Shown: positions 2,996 to 12,574 of the stretch, one piece after another
How the letters are laid out: each line of letters opens with the position of its first letter
Position numbering within the stretch: position 1 is the first letter of the stretch
Assembly (NCBI GenBank): GCA_001179505.1
Contig: CDMY01000238.1
Location: 90,201-154,200 of the forward strand
Direction: 5' to 3'
Length of the DNA: 64,000 nt
Origin: Vitrella brassicaformis CCMP3155
Lineage: Eukaryota; Protista; Chromerida
Position numbers and translations under genes: made by a program
The notes under the pieces: model-generated
What the model saw: the letters and a program-made list of their open reading frames with translations, nothing else
The model's database searches: none
Told to the model about the DNA's origin: nothing

Positions 2996-5247
2996 TCATT
3001 CTCGATAATACGAACATGAACACACGCTGCGATCAACACCACCCACTGCCACCAGCAATGTCCGCCTGGCTGTGTTGCTCGCCACTCGCTCACTCATTAA
3101 GTGCCTGTCTCGCCTGGACTTTCTGGCCTTCTTAAACCGGCTCTTGCGCACCTCGCACCACCCATCGCCGCCCACACGCACCATCCCCTCCTGCCCTTCC
3201 TTCTCCTTCTGTGTGGTGGACGTGATGGACATGGCACTGTCACTCGACGTCGAACTGAGCTGCGACAGACTCTCATCAGCGTCACGCGACTGAGGCACAC
3301 CCACGCACACGCACCCCAACACCAACAGATGAAGAGACGGATGGCTCTGTGCGTGTGCCGTGCATCGTGTGTGTGGACCTCATCCAGGTGCGATGCGGGG
3401 ACGTCGTGCAGCTTGCGCTTGGGGGAGGCCGACAACCTGAGCAGACACGATCGGATGGATGGCCCCACAAAGAATGGCGGTGTTGTCTGTCGTCCACCTA
3501 CGTGCGTGGCCGGTCTTTGGTGTCGGTATAGGATGTGGTGTTTGGGCTGGTGGAGGTGGAGGTGGGAGGAGGGTCCTGCTCGTGACAACCGATAGCCGAG
3601 TACTGCGACACACACGCAGCCTCGTAGTCGTAATCGTCGAGGACAAGGTCTTCCTGACGTCGCAGGCATTGTACGGAAGAGAGAGAGACGCTCGTCCGTC
3701 TTTGTGATAATCTGCGTACTTGTGTGTCGTTGGTTGGCTGTATGTGAGTGTGTGTTGCATCGTCCGTGTCGCCGATCATGCTCAACAGCCGATGAATCGC
3801 GCGGCTCGTGTAGGGATCCTCCACCGCGCGACCCGACGCCTCAAACGCACACACAGTAGTCTGAAACACAGAACAACCCGCCACACCACACCACACACAG
3901 TCGTGTGCATACCATGCTTATGTCTCCTTTGGCTGTGTGCTGACCTGCCGATCGATGTCAGCCTCGCCACTGTCGTCTTGCTCATCATCCCGTTCCAGGG
4001 TGATGATGGATCTCGACGTCTCGTCGCTGCGCACCAGAACCACACTGCATCCACAAAGACACACAAATGACAAATGGGGGTGAGGTCTCGAGATGTGTGT
4101 GTCGTGTGCCTTTGTGTGTATACGTGTCGTCTTTGGATAGATCCATGGTCCATGAGGTGCCGTCGTCGCATGTCAGCAGATCATCGAAGCTCCTCAGACA
4201 CAAACAGACTTGCTGCAGGAAATCCATCCATCCATCCATCCATTCATCCATGCGGTCGGTGTGTCTTGGAGTGTGGTGTCGGCTGACCGAGTGCATGATA
4301 TCGAGTGTGGGCTCGATGCCCTCCATCCCCTCACGCATACGATAGTCGTGGATGAAACGAACCTGACGCAGGCTCACAGAGACACAGGTAAGCTGCCGCA
4401 AGTGTGTGTTTGCGTGTGTGTACTTTGACGATGTCTGGCACGGCGGATCTGTTGTCGACGCCAATCTCGCCCTCCTCACGCTCCAACTTACTGCATGTAC
4501 CACACACAGACGTACATGCGAGGCGGAACCTTTGTGTGTGAGTGTATTGGTCGCAATAGCACCATCTGACGTAGTCGATGGCTGCCCACACACGAGCAAC
4601 AGTGGAGGGAAGCCATCAAAACACAGGCTGGCCAAGTTGTTTCGGTTGTTTGTTTGCTTGCCTTGCATCTCCTGCTGCCCGTCGCCGATGACGACAGCAC
4701 GCCCCACCACACCGTCCACCTTCTCAAACACCTGAGCAAATGCCTCCTCCTGCACAACCACACACACACAGAGCCGCAAACCAACGAATGAATGATAGAG
4801 TGGTCTGTCGCCCTCACCCTTGCCCCATGCTTTTCTGACCTTCCATGTGTATGGTGTCGTCTTGCCGCTGAAGAGGTCGCGGGCAGAGATGATCTCCACA
4901 CCTTCCTCGATGAGCAGGCCCCACAGCCGCGGCATGAAATCCTGCATGGTGTCCCTGATCCATGGCATTCTGCCGTTGCTGACAATCACCACCACACTGC
5001 GGCAACATCCGCCCAGCCCGCCGTCGCCGCCACAGGCCTTGCTGATGAGGTCCAGGCAGGCGCTCTCGTGGTCGAAGATGGCCGTGGCGAAGCAGCTGTT
5101 GACCTTGTATCGTTTGTCGTACTGCTGCGTGGTCATCCACGATGTGTAGAAGAGCGTGTCGTCATAGTCGAGCAGCCACAGGGTGATGGGGTGTTGCGGA
5201 CGGGCAGCTGGACGGGCAGGGGAGGTGCCGCCAGTGATCTCCGCCAT
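2996..5247 (-). CDS. HAD-superfamily-like protein (DxDDT motif) with low-complexity C-terminal extension, multi-exon
   Basis: ATG at 5247 (MAEITGG). Motifs LLDYDDTLFYTSW (HAD motif I), VVIVSNGRMPWI (motif II-like) and AVVIGDG (motif IV-like). Downstream exons inferred through the 3498-3896 and 2996-3325 ORFs; the 3' end is uncertain. Confidence 0.65.
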
Positions 5248-5365
5248 CGTATGACGAGCTAGCGCGGCCTCTTCAACACTGATGGCTCCACAAACGATTT
5301 GCAAAGAGAAAAACCAACTCCGAGCCGAAAGGCAGAGGTCTGAATGTTTACTGTGAGTCAATCAG

Positions 5366-5401
5366 TTTCACAGACCTCTAACGTTTCAGAGACCTCTAAC
5401 G
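5366..5401. promoter_or_regulatory. 18-bp tandem direct repeat in the divergent promoter between the HAD gene and LAMTOR2
   Basis: TTTCACAGACCTCTAACG followed directly by TTTCAGAGACCTCTAACG (1 mismatch). The regulatory role is inferred from position only. Confidence 0.35.
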
Positions 5402-5497
5402 CAACCACGGGGGAGAGTGATCTGCCTTGTATGCCTTCGATGCACTCTTCCATGCAGCAGTTGGGTCCACATTGAGCTGTGATCTACGTCAAGGTCG

Positions 5498-6035
5498 ATG
5501 GCGACGGGCCTCCTGCGTGCCGGCAACCTCAGCGCGTGTCTGAGGCAGGAGAAGGCCTCATGCCCCGCCATCGAGAACATCGTGTGAGCACAGCAAAAGC
5601 AACAGAGAGATGCAGCGTCTCAATGTCATCTGCCTTCATTCGCTGTGCTTTTTCATCGTGGCAGGCTGTATGAGTTGTCTGGCGGGGTGGTCGCAGCTGC
5701 AGAGAAGGCAGACGAGGAGCAAACAATCATCGTCGGTGAGAGGGATCAAGGCAGTCATCAGTCTGTGCTGTGACCCTTGCATCCCTTCTCGCTCTGCTGC
5801 TGCAGGTGCTGTGTTAGTGAATGTGTACACCGAGTACATCGCCTTCTCGGAGCAGTCCAACCAGCCGCTCAACACGGTGCTGCTGAGCACACAGCACAAG
5901 ACGATAGCCATGACGGCCATCGGCAACCTCATCCTCTGTGTGGTCGGCACCAAGGACGCACCACCAGGACTTCTGCAAAACAAGGTCTGTCAGGACACAC
6001 AGACATACTAGGCATCAGTGCACCTGTTCCCTGGC

Positions 6036-6071
<36 letters not shown>

Positions 6072-6127
6072 AGATGGAGCTGTTGAGAAACAACCTGACG
6101 CCGATATTTCGGGCGCTTGGGTATTGA
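5498..6127 (+). CDS. LAMTOR2: Ragulator complex subunit LAMTOR2 (p14)-like roadblock-fold protein, 4 exons
   Basis: Spliced product MATGLLRAGNLSACLRQ...GAVLVNVYTEY...LNTVLLSTQHKTIAMTAIGNLILCVVGTKDAPPGLLQNKMELLRNNLTPIFRALGY*. By eye it matches the LAMTOR2 pattern (MLRPKALTQVLSQ...AIASNIWAAY...VAITRVANLLLCMYAK...GMLKAKAQAL) and is about 130 aa long. Confidence 0.75.
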
Positions 6128-6451: not shown

Positions 6452-8025
6452 TTACAGGTCATGATGCGTGATAGGAATCTCTGCTTTGGTCGCCATGTCC
6501 CACACTTTCCTCAGCCTGACCTGCTGCTGACTAAACACAATGTACTCGTCCCCGGTGACCATGGCCGTCACGTGTATCGAGTCGTACTTTTCCTGCTGCA
6601 GGCTCTGGAGGGTGTGCTGGGCGATCTGGGCCTTGGTGATGGTCTTGACCCTCCCCAGGTACACTCTGGCCTCGATCATGCAGCCGCGGTGGAGGGCCTT
6701 GTTGTTGGTGATTTGCTCGGACGCCGCACTGAAGAGACACACACGCGCGCACGTACATGCAGAGACAGCACATTCACGCCATGATGTGTCATGTGCTTAC
6801 AAGTAGATGCCGCCCCCAACGAGACCGCCAGTACCAGGCTTCATGTTGCGACCCGCCGCGATCGCCTGACCTGCCGCTATGGATGTCTGGTGGTACAGCG
6901 TGACGGCCTTGGGGCAGTCTTTGGCCCAGTGCTTGCTGTCCTTGTCGCCAGACAGACGGCAGTAGTGCTGCTTGTGCTTCGTCTTGCACCCCTTGACGAG
7001 ACATTTCATGCAGTCCCTGGTCAGGTGGTCGTTGATCTTGCCGCATCGACGACACTTGTGTCTCGAGTGGTCCTTTCGGCAGCCCCGCACAGGGCAGCGA
7101 GGTGGGGATGGAGAGCGGCCGCGAGACGACGAGCCGCCGCCCTGCTGAGATGAGATCGTCAGGTTGCTGAGCAGCATGGCAGCCAGCAGCCGCTGATCGA
7201 CCGCCTGAGGGAACAGACAGGTGCATGCAGGTGAAGAGCCAGACAGTGGTGTTTGTGGTGGGCGCGTGTGCCCACCGGGGCTGCATTGGCGCCCTGTTCG
7301 TTGCTGCTGTTCTGCTGGCATGAGGCGCCTGCTGGTGGCGACTGCATCATCGATGCCAGCAGCTGCGCCGTCAAATGCTGCAAAGAGACACAGCATCGGA
7401 GTCACTTGCACCCGTACGTCAGGGCACTTCTGCACCTGCATCAGATCGGGCTGCATCGGGTTGTTGCCGGCACATGACGTCGAAGAGGCCGACGTGCTGG
7501 CCTGCGACCGTGATCTCCGTCGGGACCGCCGGCCGGATGCGCTCGAACGAGCCTGACACAGACAGCATCAGCCATAGGAGACACGATTCAGCCTTCACAT
7601 CCACCAGCCCCGTACAAGTCACCTCCGAGTCAGACTTTGAGCTGTCCGAGTCATTGCCGTCATCTCCTTCTCCGCCCGAGTCGCTGTCGCCGGCCTCCGG
7701 TGAGGGCTTCTTGAGCGTGGGGCATGCAGACGAGTAGTGATCAGAGTCCTGCAGCCAGGCAAACAGACGGAAACGCATCGGTGTTTCGGTGCATCATTGG
7801 CATTCGTTCTTAGTTGAACAGGACCGTGTCGCCGCAGGTTTTGCAGTAGTGCTTGCCCGTCCTCTGGCAGTTGGGGTGAGTGCAGGAAGGGATCTTGCAG
7901 CCGCCGGACTTACTCGCCTGACAGACAGACAGACAGACAGACAGGGACGCATCAAGCACCGAAGTGAGATGTGTCCAGGATGAGCGAGCGGTCCGTCATC
8001 AAGCCAATCTTCCCACCTGCGACAT
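6452..8025 (-). CDS. Zinc-finger-repeat + PARP-like ADP-ribosyltransferase (H-Y-E clade, compact Gig2-like catalytic domain)
   Basis: Exon 1 ATGTCGCAG (8025-8017), exon 2 7917-7825, further exons to the stop at 6452. Catalytic region TLYHQTS...GLVGGGIY|FAAS...MIEARVYLGRVK...YDSI...GDEYIV has His (6890-6892), Tyr (6803-6805) and Glu (6545-6547). Three Cys/His modules at 7719-7899 and 6911-7096. Confidence 0.8.
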
Positions 8026-8285
8026 TTGACGATGCGCCGGTTGCCGCACCACCTCCCACACTCTTCAGGGCGTTCCCAGCTCCCTTTCTGTCGTGTGCGA
8101 GCTAGTCTCGTAATCCTGTTCCTTCGACCTGCGACGCCTATTCCTGGAGAGTAGCTATGCCTACCTCCCATTCCTTTCCCTTCCACGGTGACGTCGAGGC
8201 TCGTTTGTGCCCTTCTCTTGCCGTCCCTGACCATTCAGATCTCAGCCGATCTCTTGTTTCTCTCATCCGCTTCGCACCTGCCTCC
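8026..8285. promoter_or_regulatory. Putative bidirectional promoter shared by the ART and PARG genes
   Basis: 260-bp interval between the two divergent predicted ATGs (8025 on minus, 8286 on plus). No specific motif recognised. Confidence 0.5.
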
Positions 8286-11200
8286 ATGCCTATTTCCAGC
8301 CAAGCGAAGAAAGCGAACTCAAAAAAGAACGAGGACAACCGCTCCCACTTTGAGCGTGTGCAGCAGTTCTTCGGTCTTGGCAACGGAAGCAACCCCATGG
8401 GCTGCCGTGTGAAGGGCTGCACTTTCCAAAACTGCCAGAAGACGGGCAAGCACTACTGCAAGAGCTGTGGCGACACGGACTCGGACCATTTCGCCTCGGA
8501 CTGCCCCCGCTTGCGCGGCGGACAGAACGCATCGAAACACTCGGTAGGCAGGCACAACAACAGACCAACTGTTTCTTGCGTGTGTGTGCAAAGCTGATCT
8601 GCTGTCTCTTGTGTTTCCGTTGCTGTGTGGCCTGCAGGGTGGCTCATCATCGTCAGGGCGGTCCCACGGCCACCACCCGCCCGACAGCCACGGCCACCAC
8701 CGCGGCTACCAGGACAGAGATCTCAGCCGCTCGAGGCAGCCAAGTTATGAGCCCAAGCCCCTGTCCTGCCGTGTCAAGGGCTGCACTCACCCCAACTGCC
8801 AGAAGACCGGCAAGCACTTCTGCAAGAACTGTGGCGACACGGTACCTAATAAAATCTCATGAGGCTTCGCCTGGGCTGCATGACCCTTTCTTTTCTCGCC
8901 TGGCTGCTTGCGTGCAGGATGCTGACCACTACTCGAAAGATTGCCACAAGAAACCCGGCATGCCCATGCCGCAAGCGATGCTTGACTGGGGACACACATC
9001 CAACACGCACTCGGTAAGTGAGCAGAACACACCATGCCAGTGCTGTGTGGGTGCAATTGGTGTGTGTGGTGCTCTTCTCTGCTCCGCTCTCTGCTGCAGG
9101 TGCATTCATCGCCTCCGCTGTCGTCATCGTCTTCCTCGTCTTCACCTTCGGCAGGCCTGTCGTCTCCCAGAGATGAGGGCTCGTCTCTCGTCGTCCATGC
9201 CATCCTCACCCACCATGCGGCGGAGCACGGACGCGCAAAGGACCCCGAGGACGTCACTCGTCTGCTGAGCGTGCTGCAGCAGCAAATGGGCGGCCAGGGG
9301 ATCTCATCGACCACGTTCCGTGGCGTGGAGAAGCTGTGGACCTCCATCTTCATCGACGAGACGCTGCCCGTCCTGTGTGACGTCCTGTCCAAGAGCGACC
9401 TCAGCTTTCCTCTCCGCCCCCCATGCAGCAACCCACACAGCAAAATGGAGAGACGGATGATGGCTCGCGAGTGCTTCGCCCTCGTCGGTGCGGGCTTCCT
9501 CTGCCTGCACAAGCACGACGATCCAGGCAGCCTCAACTTTGACCGCCTGTTCGACAACAGCACACCCTCGGGCATGGCCAAGCTGCAGTGCTTCATCAAC
9601 TACCTCGACACCATGGCGCGGGCCATCAAGGAGAACAAGAGCACCGAGACGGATCGTGTGGTCATCTTCCAAGCCCTGCATAGCCCAGCGGCGGGGCTTC
9701 AGGAGTGGTCGGAGTCGACTGCCACTCTGGTGGACGTGCGATTCGTGGAAGGCACCCAAGCATCCATCTTCGACTCGGAGGGCATTAGGGGCGACTTCGC
9801 CAACGAGGACATCGGTGGCGGAACGCTGGGAAACGGTACGCAGACCACCTCAGGGGACCCACATACCTCCTTGAATGTGTGTCTGTGTCTTGCCGCGTCT
9901 GTGTGAGTATTTCAGGTGCGGTGCAGGAGGAGATTCTGTTCTCGATCGAGCCCGAGTGCCTCGTCGCCCGCCACCTCTTCCCCAGGCCCATGGGATCGAC
10001 TGAGGCCTTCATGATCATCGGCTCGAGGACATTCAGCAAAACATCCGGCTACGGCCGCGAGACCCTCAGCTTCGCCGGGTCTCTTCTCGACACCGCCACC
10101 ATGATTCAGACACAAGCGGGTTCGTACCTGGACAAGTACATCGTGGCCTTCGATGCGGTCAACTTCGGCAAGCACGGGGGCGGTCAGCAGTACGACAAGA
10201 CATGTGTGCTGCGGGATCTCAACAAGGCGTACACGGCCTTCCACTGCAACAGCCTGACGGTCGTCGGTGGCATGCCATTCGCGACGGGGCAGTGAACCAC
10301 ACGGACGGAATGACAGTCACTGCCATCCTCTCTGGCCTCTTCATCTCTGTGTGTATGCGTGTATGTGCCCGTGCAGGCAATTGGGGCTGCGGTGTGTTTG
10401 GCCGCGATCCCCAGTGGAAGTTCCTCATCCAGTGGTGTGCTGCGACTCTCGCTGGGCGAAAGCTTGACTACTACCCAAGAGACGAGAAGAGCCTGATGGG
10501 CGCCAAGGACTTCATGCACAGCCTGAAGGACGCTGGGTGCGACACTGTGGGGGGATTGGTGCAGCTGATGTGCGATGGGCGCGTACGGAGGGCGATCGGG
10601 CCTCACATGTCGGCATTCGACGCCATCATGGCGGCGCTCATCGAGCAAAACACTCCGCCCTCGCCATCGAAGGTCAGCCGCCTTTGCGCGCCTTCCTGCA
10701 TCAACCAGACTGAGTGCTTGTGTGTGTGTGTGTGTGTGTGTGCTTGCAGTCCCACCTGACCTATCTTCCATTGTCAAACGGGCACCAGACCTATCGGCAG
10801 GCGTTGACCAACGGGCTGGCAGCACCACCACCGCCACACCCGGGAGATGGTGGATACGGCATGGTGAGCCAACTTGCCGTCGGAGGTGCAGCTGGCAATG
10901 TGCTCGTGTCTGCCTGTCTGTGTGTCTGTTTGTCAGGTACCATCTGCGGCCCTTCCTGAGCTGTCGGCCCCCACCGCAGGGGGACACTACACCAATGGGG
11001 AGAATCCAAGAGAGGTCGGTCGAGACACGACGCTCACACACATGTCACTGCTGTCTACTTATCTGTAGGCTGTTTACGAAGGGACAGCAGCGAAGAAGGA
11101 GCGGCCTCCAATGCTTCCGCCGCAGACAAACACGACGGCCAGCCATGCGACCGAGTACGCCAAAACAAGTAGAGAGGGGAGACGCAATGGTCGTGTAAGT

Positions 11201-11503
11201 GTTTGCTTCTGGTGCGCTGTGCTCAGATTCAATCACGTTTTTGAGTTCACGTTCCCATGCACTCGCCCCAAGCCTTCAGTGGTGCTGCTGGCGGGCTCGT
11301 GGGACGGCTGGAAGTTTGCTTCAATGCGGTGGTCAGCAATAAACAACAGATTCTACCGCCCCATGCATCCCCCCCCCGGCAATTACGAGTACAAGTTCTT
11401 CGTCGACGAGGAGTGGCAGTGCTGCAATGACCAGAAGATGGAGAACGGCCCGTATGGGCCGAACAATGTGGTCACCATCCGGCCTGACGGACACGCGGTG
11501 TGA
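8286..11503 (+). CDS. PARG: Poly(ADP-ribose) glycohydrolase with two N-terminal zinc-finger repeats and a C-terminal CBM48/AMPK-beta-type carbohydrate-binding domain
   Basis: PARG signatures DFANEDIGGGTLGNG|AVQEEILF (GGG-x-QEE, 9814-9932), YGRETLSFAG, IVAFDA, RDLNKAYTAF and FATG|NWGCGVFGRDPQWKFLIQWCAATLAGR. Cys/His modules at 8403-8507 and 8767-8947. The last exon FEFTF...VLLAGSWDGWK...PPGNYEYKFFVDEEWQ...GPNNVV is CBM48-like. Phase-compatible GT-AG junctions link all parts. Confidence 0.88.
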
Positions 11504-12333: not shown

Positions 12334-12540
12334 TCAGCCGGTCTCTCCGGTCTCTCCAGATCGCGGCAGGCTCGTGGACAGCCTGGTAACATACATGCTG
12401 GCATCAGCGGCAGGTAGATATGCTCACACCACTTTGCGCCCCCACTCATACCTGAGAATCTTGATACAAGTGTAGAAGACATCTCTGTTGTACTCGCTGT
12501 CGAAAAAGAGGAACACCTCCCTCTGCAATACATCCACACA

Positions 12541-12574
<34 letters not shown>

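Follow-up and report, generated by a model that had tools for sequence, protein, structure and literature searches.

The stretch of DNA analysed here (the window) comprises 64 000 nt of the genome of the chromerid Vitrella brassicaformis CCMP3155 (contig C238, CDMY01000238.1, positions 90201-154200), and this report concerns two head-to-head genes that lie at C238:96-100k: an ADP-ribosyltransferase (ART) gene on the minus strand (6452-8025; positions without a contig prefix are those of the window) and a gene for poly(ADP-ribose) glycohydrolase (PARG) on the plus strand (8286-11503). Their start codons, at 8025 and 8286, leave a gap of exactly 260 bp, as an earlier note, made from the sequence alone, had stated. 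Our own-genome searches covered the CCMP3155 assembly (72.70 Mb, 1064 contigs), and the RNA evidence is drawn from one small public run (X1; 25 M letters), whose origin from RNA is evident from the spliced joints in its contigs. Protein database searches returned neither window protein, and therefore both gene models were built by hand; a word-indexed protein search with an ART exon likewise gave no match, probably a length-window effect (the closest annotated paralogue has 392 residues). A bacterial or contaminant origin of the locus was rejected, given the spliceosomal introns, the spliced joints in one RNA contig and the location of the contig within the 72.7-Mb Vitrella assembly.

The ART gene is assembled from minus-strand exons at 8025-8017, 7917-7825, 7748-7623, 7377-7276, 7204-6801 and 6728-6452 (stop codon at 6454-6452). 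Every junction is GT-AG and in frame, and the product has 336 residues, or 302 if exon 7377-7276, which is probably real on the basis of its similarity to the paralogue P0046, is left out. The catalytic domain (6500-6904) is compact, at ~115 residues, and is interrupted by intron 6800-6729 after GGGIYF; the domain is uninterrupted in the distant Vitrella ART paralogues. The spliced gene encodes all three residues of the H-Y-E triad that the earlier note had seen in a compact PARP-like domain on this strand, within the motifs LYHQTS (6898-6881), GGGIYF/A (6817-6725; a slash marks an intron) and GDEYIV (6553-6536). A profile built from eight intron-less Vitrella paralogues finds PARP3 (3c49) with E = 1.6e-7, placing the H and Y motifs opposite LWHGT and GKGIYFA; the E-strand falls opposite DEFVVYK of PARP4 in a non-significant match (E = 0.19). 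An AlphaFold2 (AF2) model of P0046 residues 225-392, which are 57% identical to the window ART, has a predicted local distance difference test (pLDDT) score of 85.5, and, among the Foldseek matches listed for this model, the best 50 all belong to PARP catalytic or ART-domain structures (PARP1-4 and the tankyrases; E-values of 7e-6 to 8e-5). On the motifs, the profile and the model, we take the ART of the window to be a true member of the PARP-like H-Y-E class, though a very compact one, and transfer activity is predicted for it. The profile and structure check that the earlier note had proposed is borne out for the family, but the window sequence itself falls below the Pfam PARP cut-off.

The PARG gene has ten plus-strand exons (8286-8543, 8638-8841, 8918-9013, 9100-9835, 9916-10287, 10377-10672, 10750-10863, 10937-11014, 11069-11154 and 11227-11503) that run in frame from the ATG at 8286 to the stop codon at 11501-11503, and it encodes 838 residues provided that intron 5 is removed. 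Joints or loose ends of X1 contigs back the junctions 8841/8918, 9013/9100, 9835/9916, 10863/10937, 11014/11069 and 11154/11227. Both Pfam halves of the enzyme exceed their cut-offs: PARG_cat_N (PF20811), the accessory helical part, scores 35.2 bits against 25.6, and PARG_cat_C (PF05028), the macro fold, 98.4 bits against 26.3. The canonical features of the family are GGGx{6,8}QEE, a conserved preceding Asn and a G[A,V][F,Y] motif in the diphosphate loop (PMC7050489). Here, the catalytic sequence GGGTLGNG/AVQEE (GGGx7QEE) with its preceding Asn, FANEDIGGGTLGNG/AVQEE, is formed across intron 9836-9915, the junction being supported by the loose end of an RNA contig, and the diphosphate-binding loop GNWGCGVFG, with its GVF motif, is encoded in exon 6, behind intron 5, which has a GG donor. 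Judged by its sequence, the gene belongs to the canonical PARG family; of the canonical active site described in the earlier note, GGG...QEE is encoded and both Pfam halves are present, but ATG/NWGCG spans the GG-donor intron.

The last exon (11227-11503, plus strand) encodes a C-terminal CBM48, or AMPK-beta glycogen-binding module (Pfam AMPK1_CBM, PF16561; 44.1 bits against a cut-off of 26.8). In one X1 contig (record 7), exon 6 (10486-10672) runs on by way of three intervening exons into this last exon; the CBM48 is therefore joined to the catalytic exons, and the product has the order finger-finger-PARG-CBM48. The PARG-CBM48 architecture is also annotated in the paralogues P0154, P0156 and P0157, and the CBM48 is 41-47% identical in amino acid sequence among the PARG paralogues, with a ratio of nonsynonymous to synonymous divergence (dN/dS) of 0.3-0.6. 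A literature search found no paper linking PARG and CBM48, and the combination would be a previously unreported architecture.

The shared finger and the divergent promoter

Both proteins carry the same Cys/His module, in the numbers given in the earlier note: three copies in the ART and two in the PARG. On the minus strand, ART finger 1 (CKIPSCTHPNCQRTGKHYCKTCGDT/DSDHYSSAC) spans 7899-7722 and is split by intron 7824-7749, whereas fingers 2 and 3 lie at 7096-7010 and 7003-6914; on the plus strand, PARG finger 1 lies at 8403-8504, and PARG finger 2, which intron 8842-8917 interrupts (a joint seen in RNA), occupies 8767-8944. The ligands are spaced as C-x4-C-x(3-5)-[CH]-x(3-5)-H-x-C-x2-C-x(5-6)-H-x4-C, which gives seven to eight of them, enough for two zinc ions. 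In ART finger 3, the sequence CRLSGD replaces the CRLCGD of the paralogues, such that Ser stands for a CxxC cysteine and one zinc ligand is lost.

That the two proteins share one module, as the earlier note had proposed, is seen most directly in the DNA. Over 63 nt, the second exons of the two genes form an inverted repeat of 90% identity, and PARG exon 1 matches this same part of the ART gene at 87%. Moreover, ART finger 1 and PARG finger 2 are cut by an intron at the same codon (GDT/DSDH), and the 3' ends of these introns are also alike. The inverted repeat and the common intron position point to an exon having been copied across the divergent promoter. The finger is almost confined to such genes: of 30 matches in the whole genome, ~24 fall in ART or PARG loci, two more in finger+ART genes and two in finger-only genes. 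It is also the best-conserved part of both proteins, with ~90% amino acid identity between ART paralogues against 55-65% overall. Two finger genes, at C718:18.8k (L045; P0152) and C291:103k (L046), have no detectable ART or PARG within ~4 kb; P0152 carries fingers 1 and 2 and an ART-type linker, and its model ends before any ART domain.

Pfam searches on single exons named no family for the finger. The CCHC zinc knuckle (PF00098) matches it below the cut-off (E = 0.045), and the C-x2-C-x4-H-x4-C spacing of that family is not found; UniRef labels the finger proteins 'CCHC-type'. An AF2 model of the finger has a pLDDT of 87, and the Foldseek rows for it, all non-significant (E-values of 4-8), are RNA- or DNA-bound CCHC knuckles (Lin28 and retroviral nucleocapsid).

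The promoter region between the genes (8026-8285, 260 bp) holds two conserved blocks. In an alignment with two paralogous pairs, the first (8095-8113; GTGCGAGCTAGTCTCGTAA, 19 nt) is identical in three head-to-head pairs and the second (~8190-8212) is identical or nearly so in three. The 19-mer occurs with no mismatch in only these three promoters in 72.7 Mb, with no other site at zero or one mismatch, and both blocks have been kept while the synonymous divergence (dS) of the coding regions of the pairs has reached 0.3-0.8. Within the first block lies a short inverted repeat (CGAG..CTCG). The PARG RNA contig begins at 8217.

Recurrence of the gene pair

The own-genome searches found six close ART and seven close PARG paralogues. 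Five ARTs lie within ~4 kb of a PARG, and these adjacent pairs comprise four that are head-to-head (the window locus at C238:96-100k, together with C718:54-56k, C718:171-175k and C718:238-241k) and one in tandem (C718:229-232k); most of the copies are on a single 287-kb contig, C718. For one ART to fall by chance no more than 4 kb from one or other of seven PARGs in a genome of 72.7 Mb, the probability is ~8e-4; the copies are paralogues, however, and their adjacencies are not independent. With dS of 0.2-1.3 between them (dN/dS 0.2-0.8), the pairs are not recent. The nearest relatives of both window genes are found at the same locus, C718:230k, and the pairs at 172k and 239k on C718 are sisters in both the ART and the PARG trees. 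The seven paired-type PARGs group together (support 100/99), to the exclusion of the two plain PARGs on C298 and C406, which have no finger, no CBM48 and no ART within 5 kb.

In the public proteome, the paralogues are labelled 'CCHC-type domain-containing protein' or 'poly(ADP-ribose) glycohydrolase'. The ART on contig C801, where the paralogue is CEM33894.1 of V. brassicaformis CCMP3155, is fragmentary. At C718:230k, the public model P0151 (L032, 4024-6102) has a single frame that begins behind a stop codon and passes from the last catalytic exon of the PARG, by way of a linker and a finger exon, into a whole ART; this might reflect a fusion of PARG and ART, either past or by read-through, or else two genes merged in annotation.

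In eukaryotes, the genes for PARP and PARG are as a rule not linked, and a literature search found no description of this ART/PARG pairing. The recurrent pairs favour a co-inherited, probably co-regulated, module. The earlier note had cautioned that orientation is weak evidence by itself and had given more weight to the shared domain; recurrence at five loci, the finger and the promoter block together go well past orientation.

The proposed writer/eraser module and rival readings

On balance, we consider it probable that V. brassicaformis possesses a lineage-specific ADP-ribosylation module in several copies, the window locus being one of them, and that writer and eraser are co-targeted by the shared finger. 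The writer component is a mini-PARP, with a Gig2-like layout and belonging to a widespread protist family, preceded by tandem, knuckle-like fingers that could each hold two zinc ions; the eraser component is a canonical-type PARG, diverging from the same short promoter, which bears these fingers N-terminally and ends in a CBM48. The finger would bring both enzymes to the same target, for which our leading guess is single-stranded nucleic acid or a ribonucleoprotein, although it might equally be a protein or ADP-ribose itself. There, the ART would draw on NAD+ to attach ADP-ribose, singly or in a short chain, and the PARG would strip it, which would make the mark transient or protect self targets from it. 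A role in conflict or stress, more than in housekeeping DNA repair, is suggested by the expansion and clustering of the genes, by their fairly rapid evolution and by the decay of copies. Co-targeting, ART activity, reversal by PARG and the conflict or stress role are all inferred. The co-targeted switch of the earlier note is favoured by linkage, the private finger, recurrence and the promoter block, but sits uneasily with the state of the window eraser, which has a defective donor and a retained intron.

Several observations weigh against this reading. With its last exon, the window ART scores 17.1 bits against Pfam PARP (PF00644), below the gathering score of 26.7 (a match to ART-PolyVal, at 17.7 bits, is also sub-threshold), and in an alignment to human PARP1 made by hand, a Lys seems to stand for the second nicotinamide-stacking Tyr. 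Run X1 gives zero coverage along the whole ART gene, which is weak evidence given the size of the run; it does cover the PARG, and 'co-transcribed', as the earlier note had it, is wrong in the operon sense since the genes are divergent. Binding of nucleic acid by the finger, to which the non-significant Foldseek rows and the UniRef label point, is a lead and not a result. The five adjacencies are paralogous pairs and do not amount to five independent events. Beyond the sister pairs, the ART and PARG trees are unresolved and star-like, and too poor for a test of co-phylogeny. Outside Vitrella, the loci of three family members (P0025, P0012 and P0070) were checked and showed no PARG neighbour. 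Lesions affect three of the five ART-linked PARGs: the window copy has its donor change, that at C718:229k an in-frame stop between DPQ and KLL (L032, C718:226000-235999, around 3900-6100), and that at C718:241k a frameshift at the end of exon 5 (L037, C718:236000-245999, around 5065-5440). The stop and the frameshift hit the same C-terminal third of the catalytic domain. In the window copy, the donor of intron 5 (10288-10376, plus strand; GG at 10288-10289) reads ACGG/GGCAGT, as against ACGG/GTGAGT in each of eight PARG paralogues; only one RNA contig crosses this intron (record 6 of X1, 10153-10386), and it is unspliced.

Three DNA runs bear out the assembly at this donor. GT-AG, GC-AG and shifted boundaries were all tried for intron 5, and none of them keeps the frame: ATGNWGCG is in frame only with a GG..AG intron (or the equivalent GC..GG), and a cryptic GT four bases downstream of the donor shifts the frame. 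The other PARG introns reached by RNA contigs are all spliced. Retention of intron 5 introduces an in-frame TGA at 10293-10295 and yields a 557-residue product that ends in ATGQ and the stop; this form keeps GGGx7QEE, but the diphosphate-binding loop, the final part of the macro fold and the whole CBM48 are missing from it. The exons past the lesion are still open, with dN/dS of 0.21-0.37 relative to the paralogues, and therefore either the donor change is recent or some non-canonical splicing persists. The PARG copy at the window locus is probably crippled by this GT>GG change, which looks recent. In that event, the eraser role at the locus would pass to the intact paralogues that carry the same finger.

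A first alternative is that the window pair is a decaying, non-functional copy, with the PARG a unitary pseudogene in the making, the ART silent and damaged in finger 3, and function residing with the C718 paralogues. We regard this as possible, if on the unlikely side. The altered donor and the retained intron speak for it, as do the missing RNA coverage of the ART, the Cys to Ser change in its third finger and the failure of both proteins to appear in the protein database searches. All of the ART and PARG exons are open, however, and the H-Y-E triad of the ART is intact; moreover, the PARG exons past the lesion are constrained, spliced and expressed, and low-level non-canonical splicing is compatible with a single small RNA run.

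A second alternative makes the adjacency a matter of history: a small inverted duplication carried the finger exon to the other side of the divergent promoter, segmental duplication in a region rich in ART and PARG genes (C718 and C238) later spread the block, and the enzymes act on unrelated targets. The inverted repeat of finger DNA across the promoter and the shared intron position are what such a history would leave, and the concentration of copies on one contig, the star-like trees and the decay of several copies agree with it. We nevertheless hold it to be unlikely, as the pairs have stayed adjacent through dS of up to ~1.3 under purifying selection, the promoter block has remained identical while the coding DNA diverged, the finger is the part of both proteins that has changed least, and only the ART-linked clade of PARGs possesses it.

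A more specific and quite doubtful version of the co-targeted module is a eukaryotic DarTG-like immunity, in which the finger would guide the mini-PARP onto single-stranded viral or transposon nucleic acid, the linked PARG would erase the mark on self, and the module would turn over in the manner of immune genes. If this were true, the pair would be the first eukaryotic linked writer and eraser genes with a shared targeting domain. More improbable still is a selfish or abortive-infection module of toxin and antidote, in the DarT/DarG sense, with the ART toxic when unopposed and the linked PARG as its antidote. Linkage of writer to eraser, the multiple copies and the presence of PARG, and not ART, RNA in run X1 fit this idea, and the related compact H-Y-E ARTs include bacterial toxins (weak Tox-ART-HYD1 matches in 9 of 101 members of the family). 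The genes are, however, divergent and eukaryotic rather than in an operon, and three antidote copies are broken beside ARTs with intact H, Y and E (these motifs are kept by all five ARTs next to linked PARGs), even if rescue in trans by paralogues is possible. The least probable reading of all is regulation of storage glucan, whereby CBM48 would anchor the PARG on starch or amylopectin granules to reverse ADP-ribosylation of granule proteins: the CBM48 is conserved on the PARG paralogues and one ART-family member elsewhere has a CBM_20 starch-binding domain, but the ARTs of the pairs have no CBM, the shared module is the finger and not the CBM, and glucan binding is only predicted.

The gene pair matters in several respects. 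The genome organization itself names a candidate targeting domain, in that one private finger marks both the mini-PARP and the PARG, and it offers a testable writer/eraser pair in Vitrella, a free-living relative of the apicomplexan parasites. Moreover, any function found here would extend to a large uncharacterized ART family.

Known systems and the wider family

The sequence and structure matches of the ART are best to the PARP catalytic domains (PARP1-4 and the tankyrases; PF00644), with which it shares the ART fold and the H-Y-E triad in LYHxT, GxGIYFA and EYxV contexts. At ~115 residues, however, it is about half their size and has no helical regulatory domain, and its N-terminal partners are knuckle-like fingers rather than PARP-type zinc fingers, BRCT or WGR domains. 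The Gig2 proteins of fish and amphibians provide a parallel in layout: they are small, with a weak PARP-like core, the order xYHxT ... GxGV/I[HY] ... E-strand near the C-terminus, and a lineage-specific expansion. In a comparison confined to motifs, MYHGT, GRGVHLS and EEDCVWDPNQI of Gig2 stand against LYHQT, GGGIYFA and EYVVYNxDQV of the family to which the Vitrella ART belongs; unlike the Vitrella ART, Gig2 is devoid of the finger, and a PARG partner has not been reported for it. Gig2 is interferon-induced, and the paper that describes it lists dinoflagellate and haptophyte homologues (PMC3617106); no Gig2 sequence in the table of that paper carries the YHQT, GIYFA or YVVY motifs.

The comparison with bacterial DarT/DarG made in the earlier note holds in function only. 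As there, an ART of the H-Y-E clade is genomically linked to a hydrolase that would reverse it, and a nucleic-acid target is plausible; but DarG is a TARG1/ALC1-like macrodomain in an operon, whereas the Vitrella eraser is a canonical PARG with an accessory domain, and the Vitrella genes are divergent, intron-rich and both endowed with the shared finger. In the macro-PARPs (PARP9/14/15), an ADP-ribose-binding or -removing macrodomain is combined with a PARP-like writer, in antiviral contexts. Both activities reside there in one polypeptide, whereas in Vitrella they are divided between two genes with a common promoter and finger.

The eraser agrees with the canonical eukaryotic PARGs in having both Pfam halves above threshold and in encoding GGGx7QEE, the preceding Asn and G[AV][FY]. 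It differs in that the paired PARG adds N-terminal fingers and a C-terminal CBM48, and in that the intron-5 donor of the window copy is defective. The bonds that a canonical PARG cleaves are ribose-ribose bonds, and this would suggest oligo- or poly-ADP-ribose. Human PARG reportedly also acts as an efficient ADPr-RNA hydrolase that takes ADP-ribose off RNA ends (PMC11920425, PMC6582358), which leaves room for a nucleic-acid target.

Among 1.84 billion proteins, the paralogue profile finds 1749 cluster representatives at E<=1e-3. The few sources that were traced include the dinoflagellate Effrenium voratum, the foraminifer Bolivina argentea and the choanoflagellate Acanthoeca spectabilis. Sub-threshold Pfam PARP matches at E<=0.01 are found for 63 of 101 members (best E 3.1e-7), and weak ART-PolyVal matches for 25. 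Family members elsewhere are fused to PBZ (two), WWE (one), CBM_20 (one, as noted above), ankyrin repeats or parts of MOV10-type helicases; PBZ and WWE are readers of poly(ADP-ribose) or iso-ADP-ribose. Proteins that combine the finger with an ART are not limited to Vitrella, P0011 and P0057 being two examples from elsewhere.

Among the non-Vitrella neighbourhoods inspected, only one showed a PARG. This is a gene-dense, apparently intron-less metagenome contig from peat or bog (L041/L042), which may come from a giant virus and which encodes P0160, an ART-family protein whose N-terminus is MYND-like. At a distance of 8.7 kb there is a PARG-like gene (the two genes are at 1280-2302 and 10001-11416), in which QEE and TGNWGCGAFGGD are present and GGG is replaced.

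Within Vitrella, distant intron-less finger+ART genes of ~150 residues (for example, P0002 and P0004; loci L007-L014) are clustered at C238:60-79k, upstream of the window, and at C718:145-147k. In the six-frame matches of four of them, the ART domain is followed at once by a TGA that has the look of a normal stop codon. In the window itself, (TG)n/(CA)n microsatellites are frequent in introns (for instance, at 6060-6085, 10706-10752 and 12500-12560), and a G follows nearly all of the intron acceptors (cagG).

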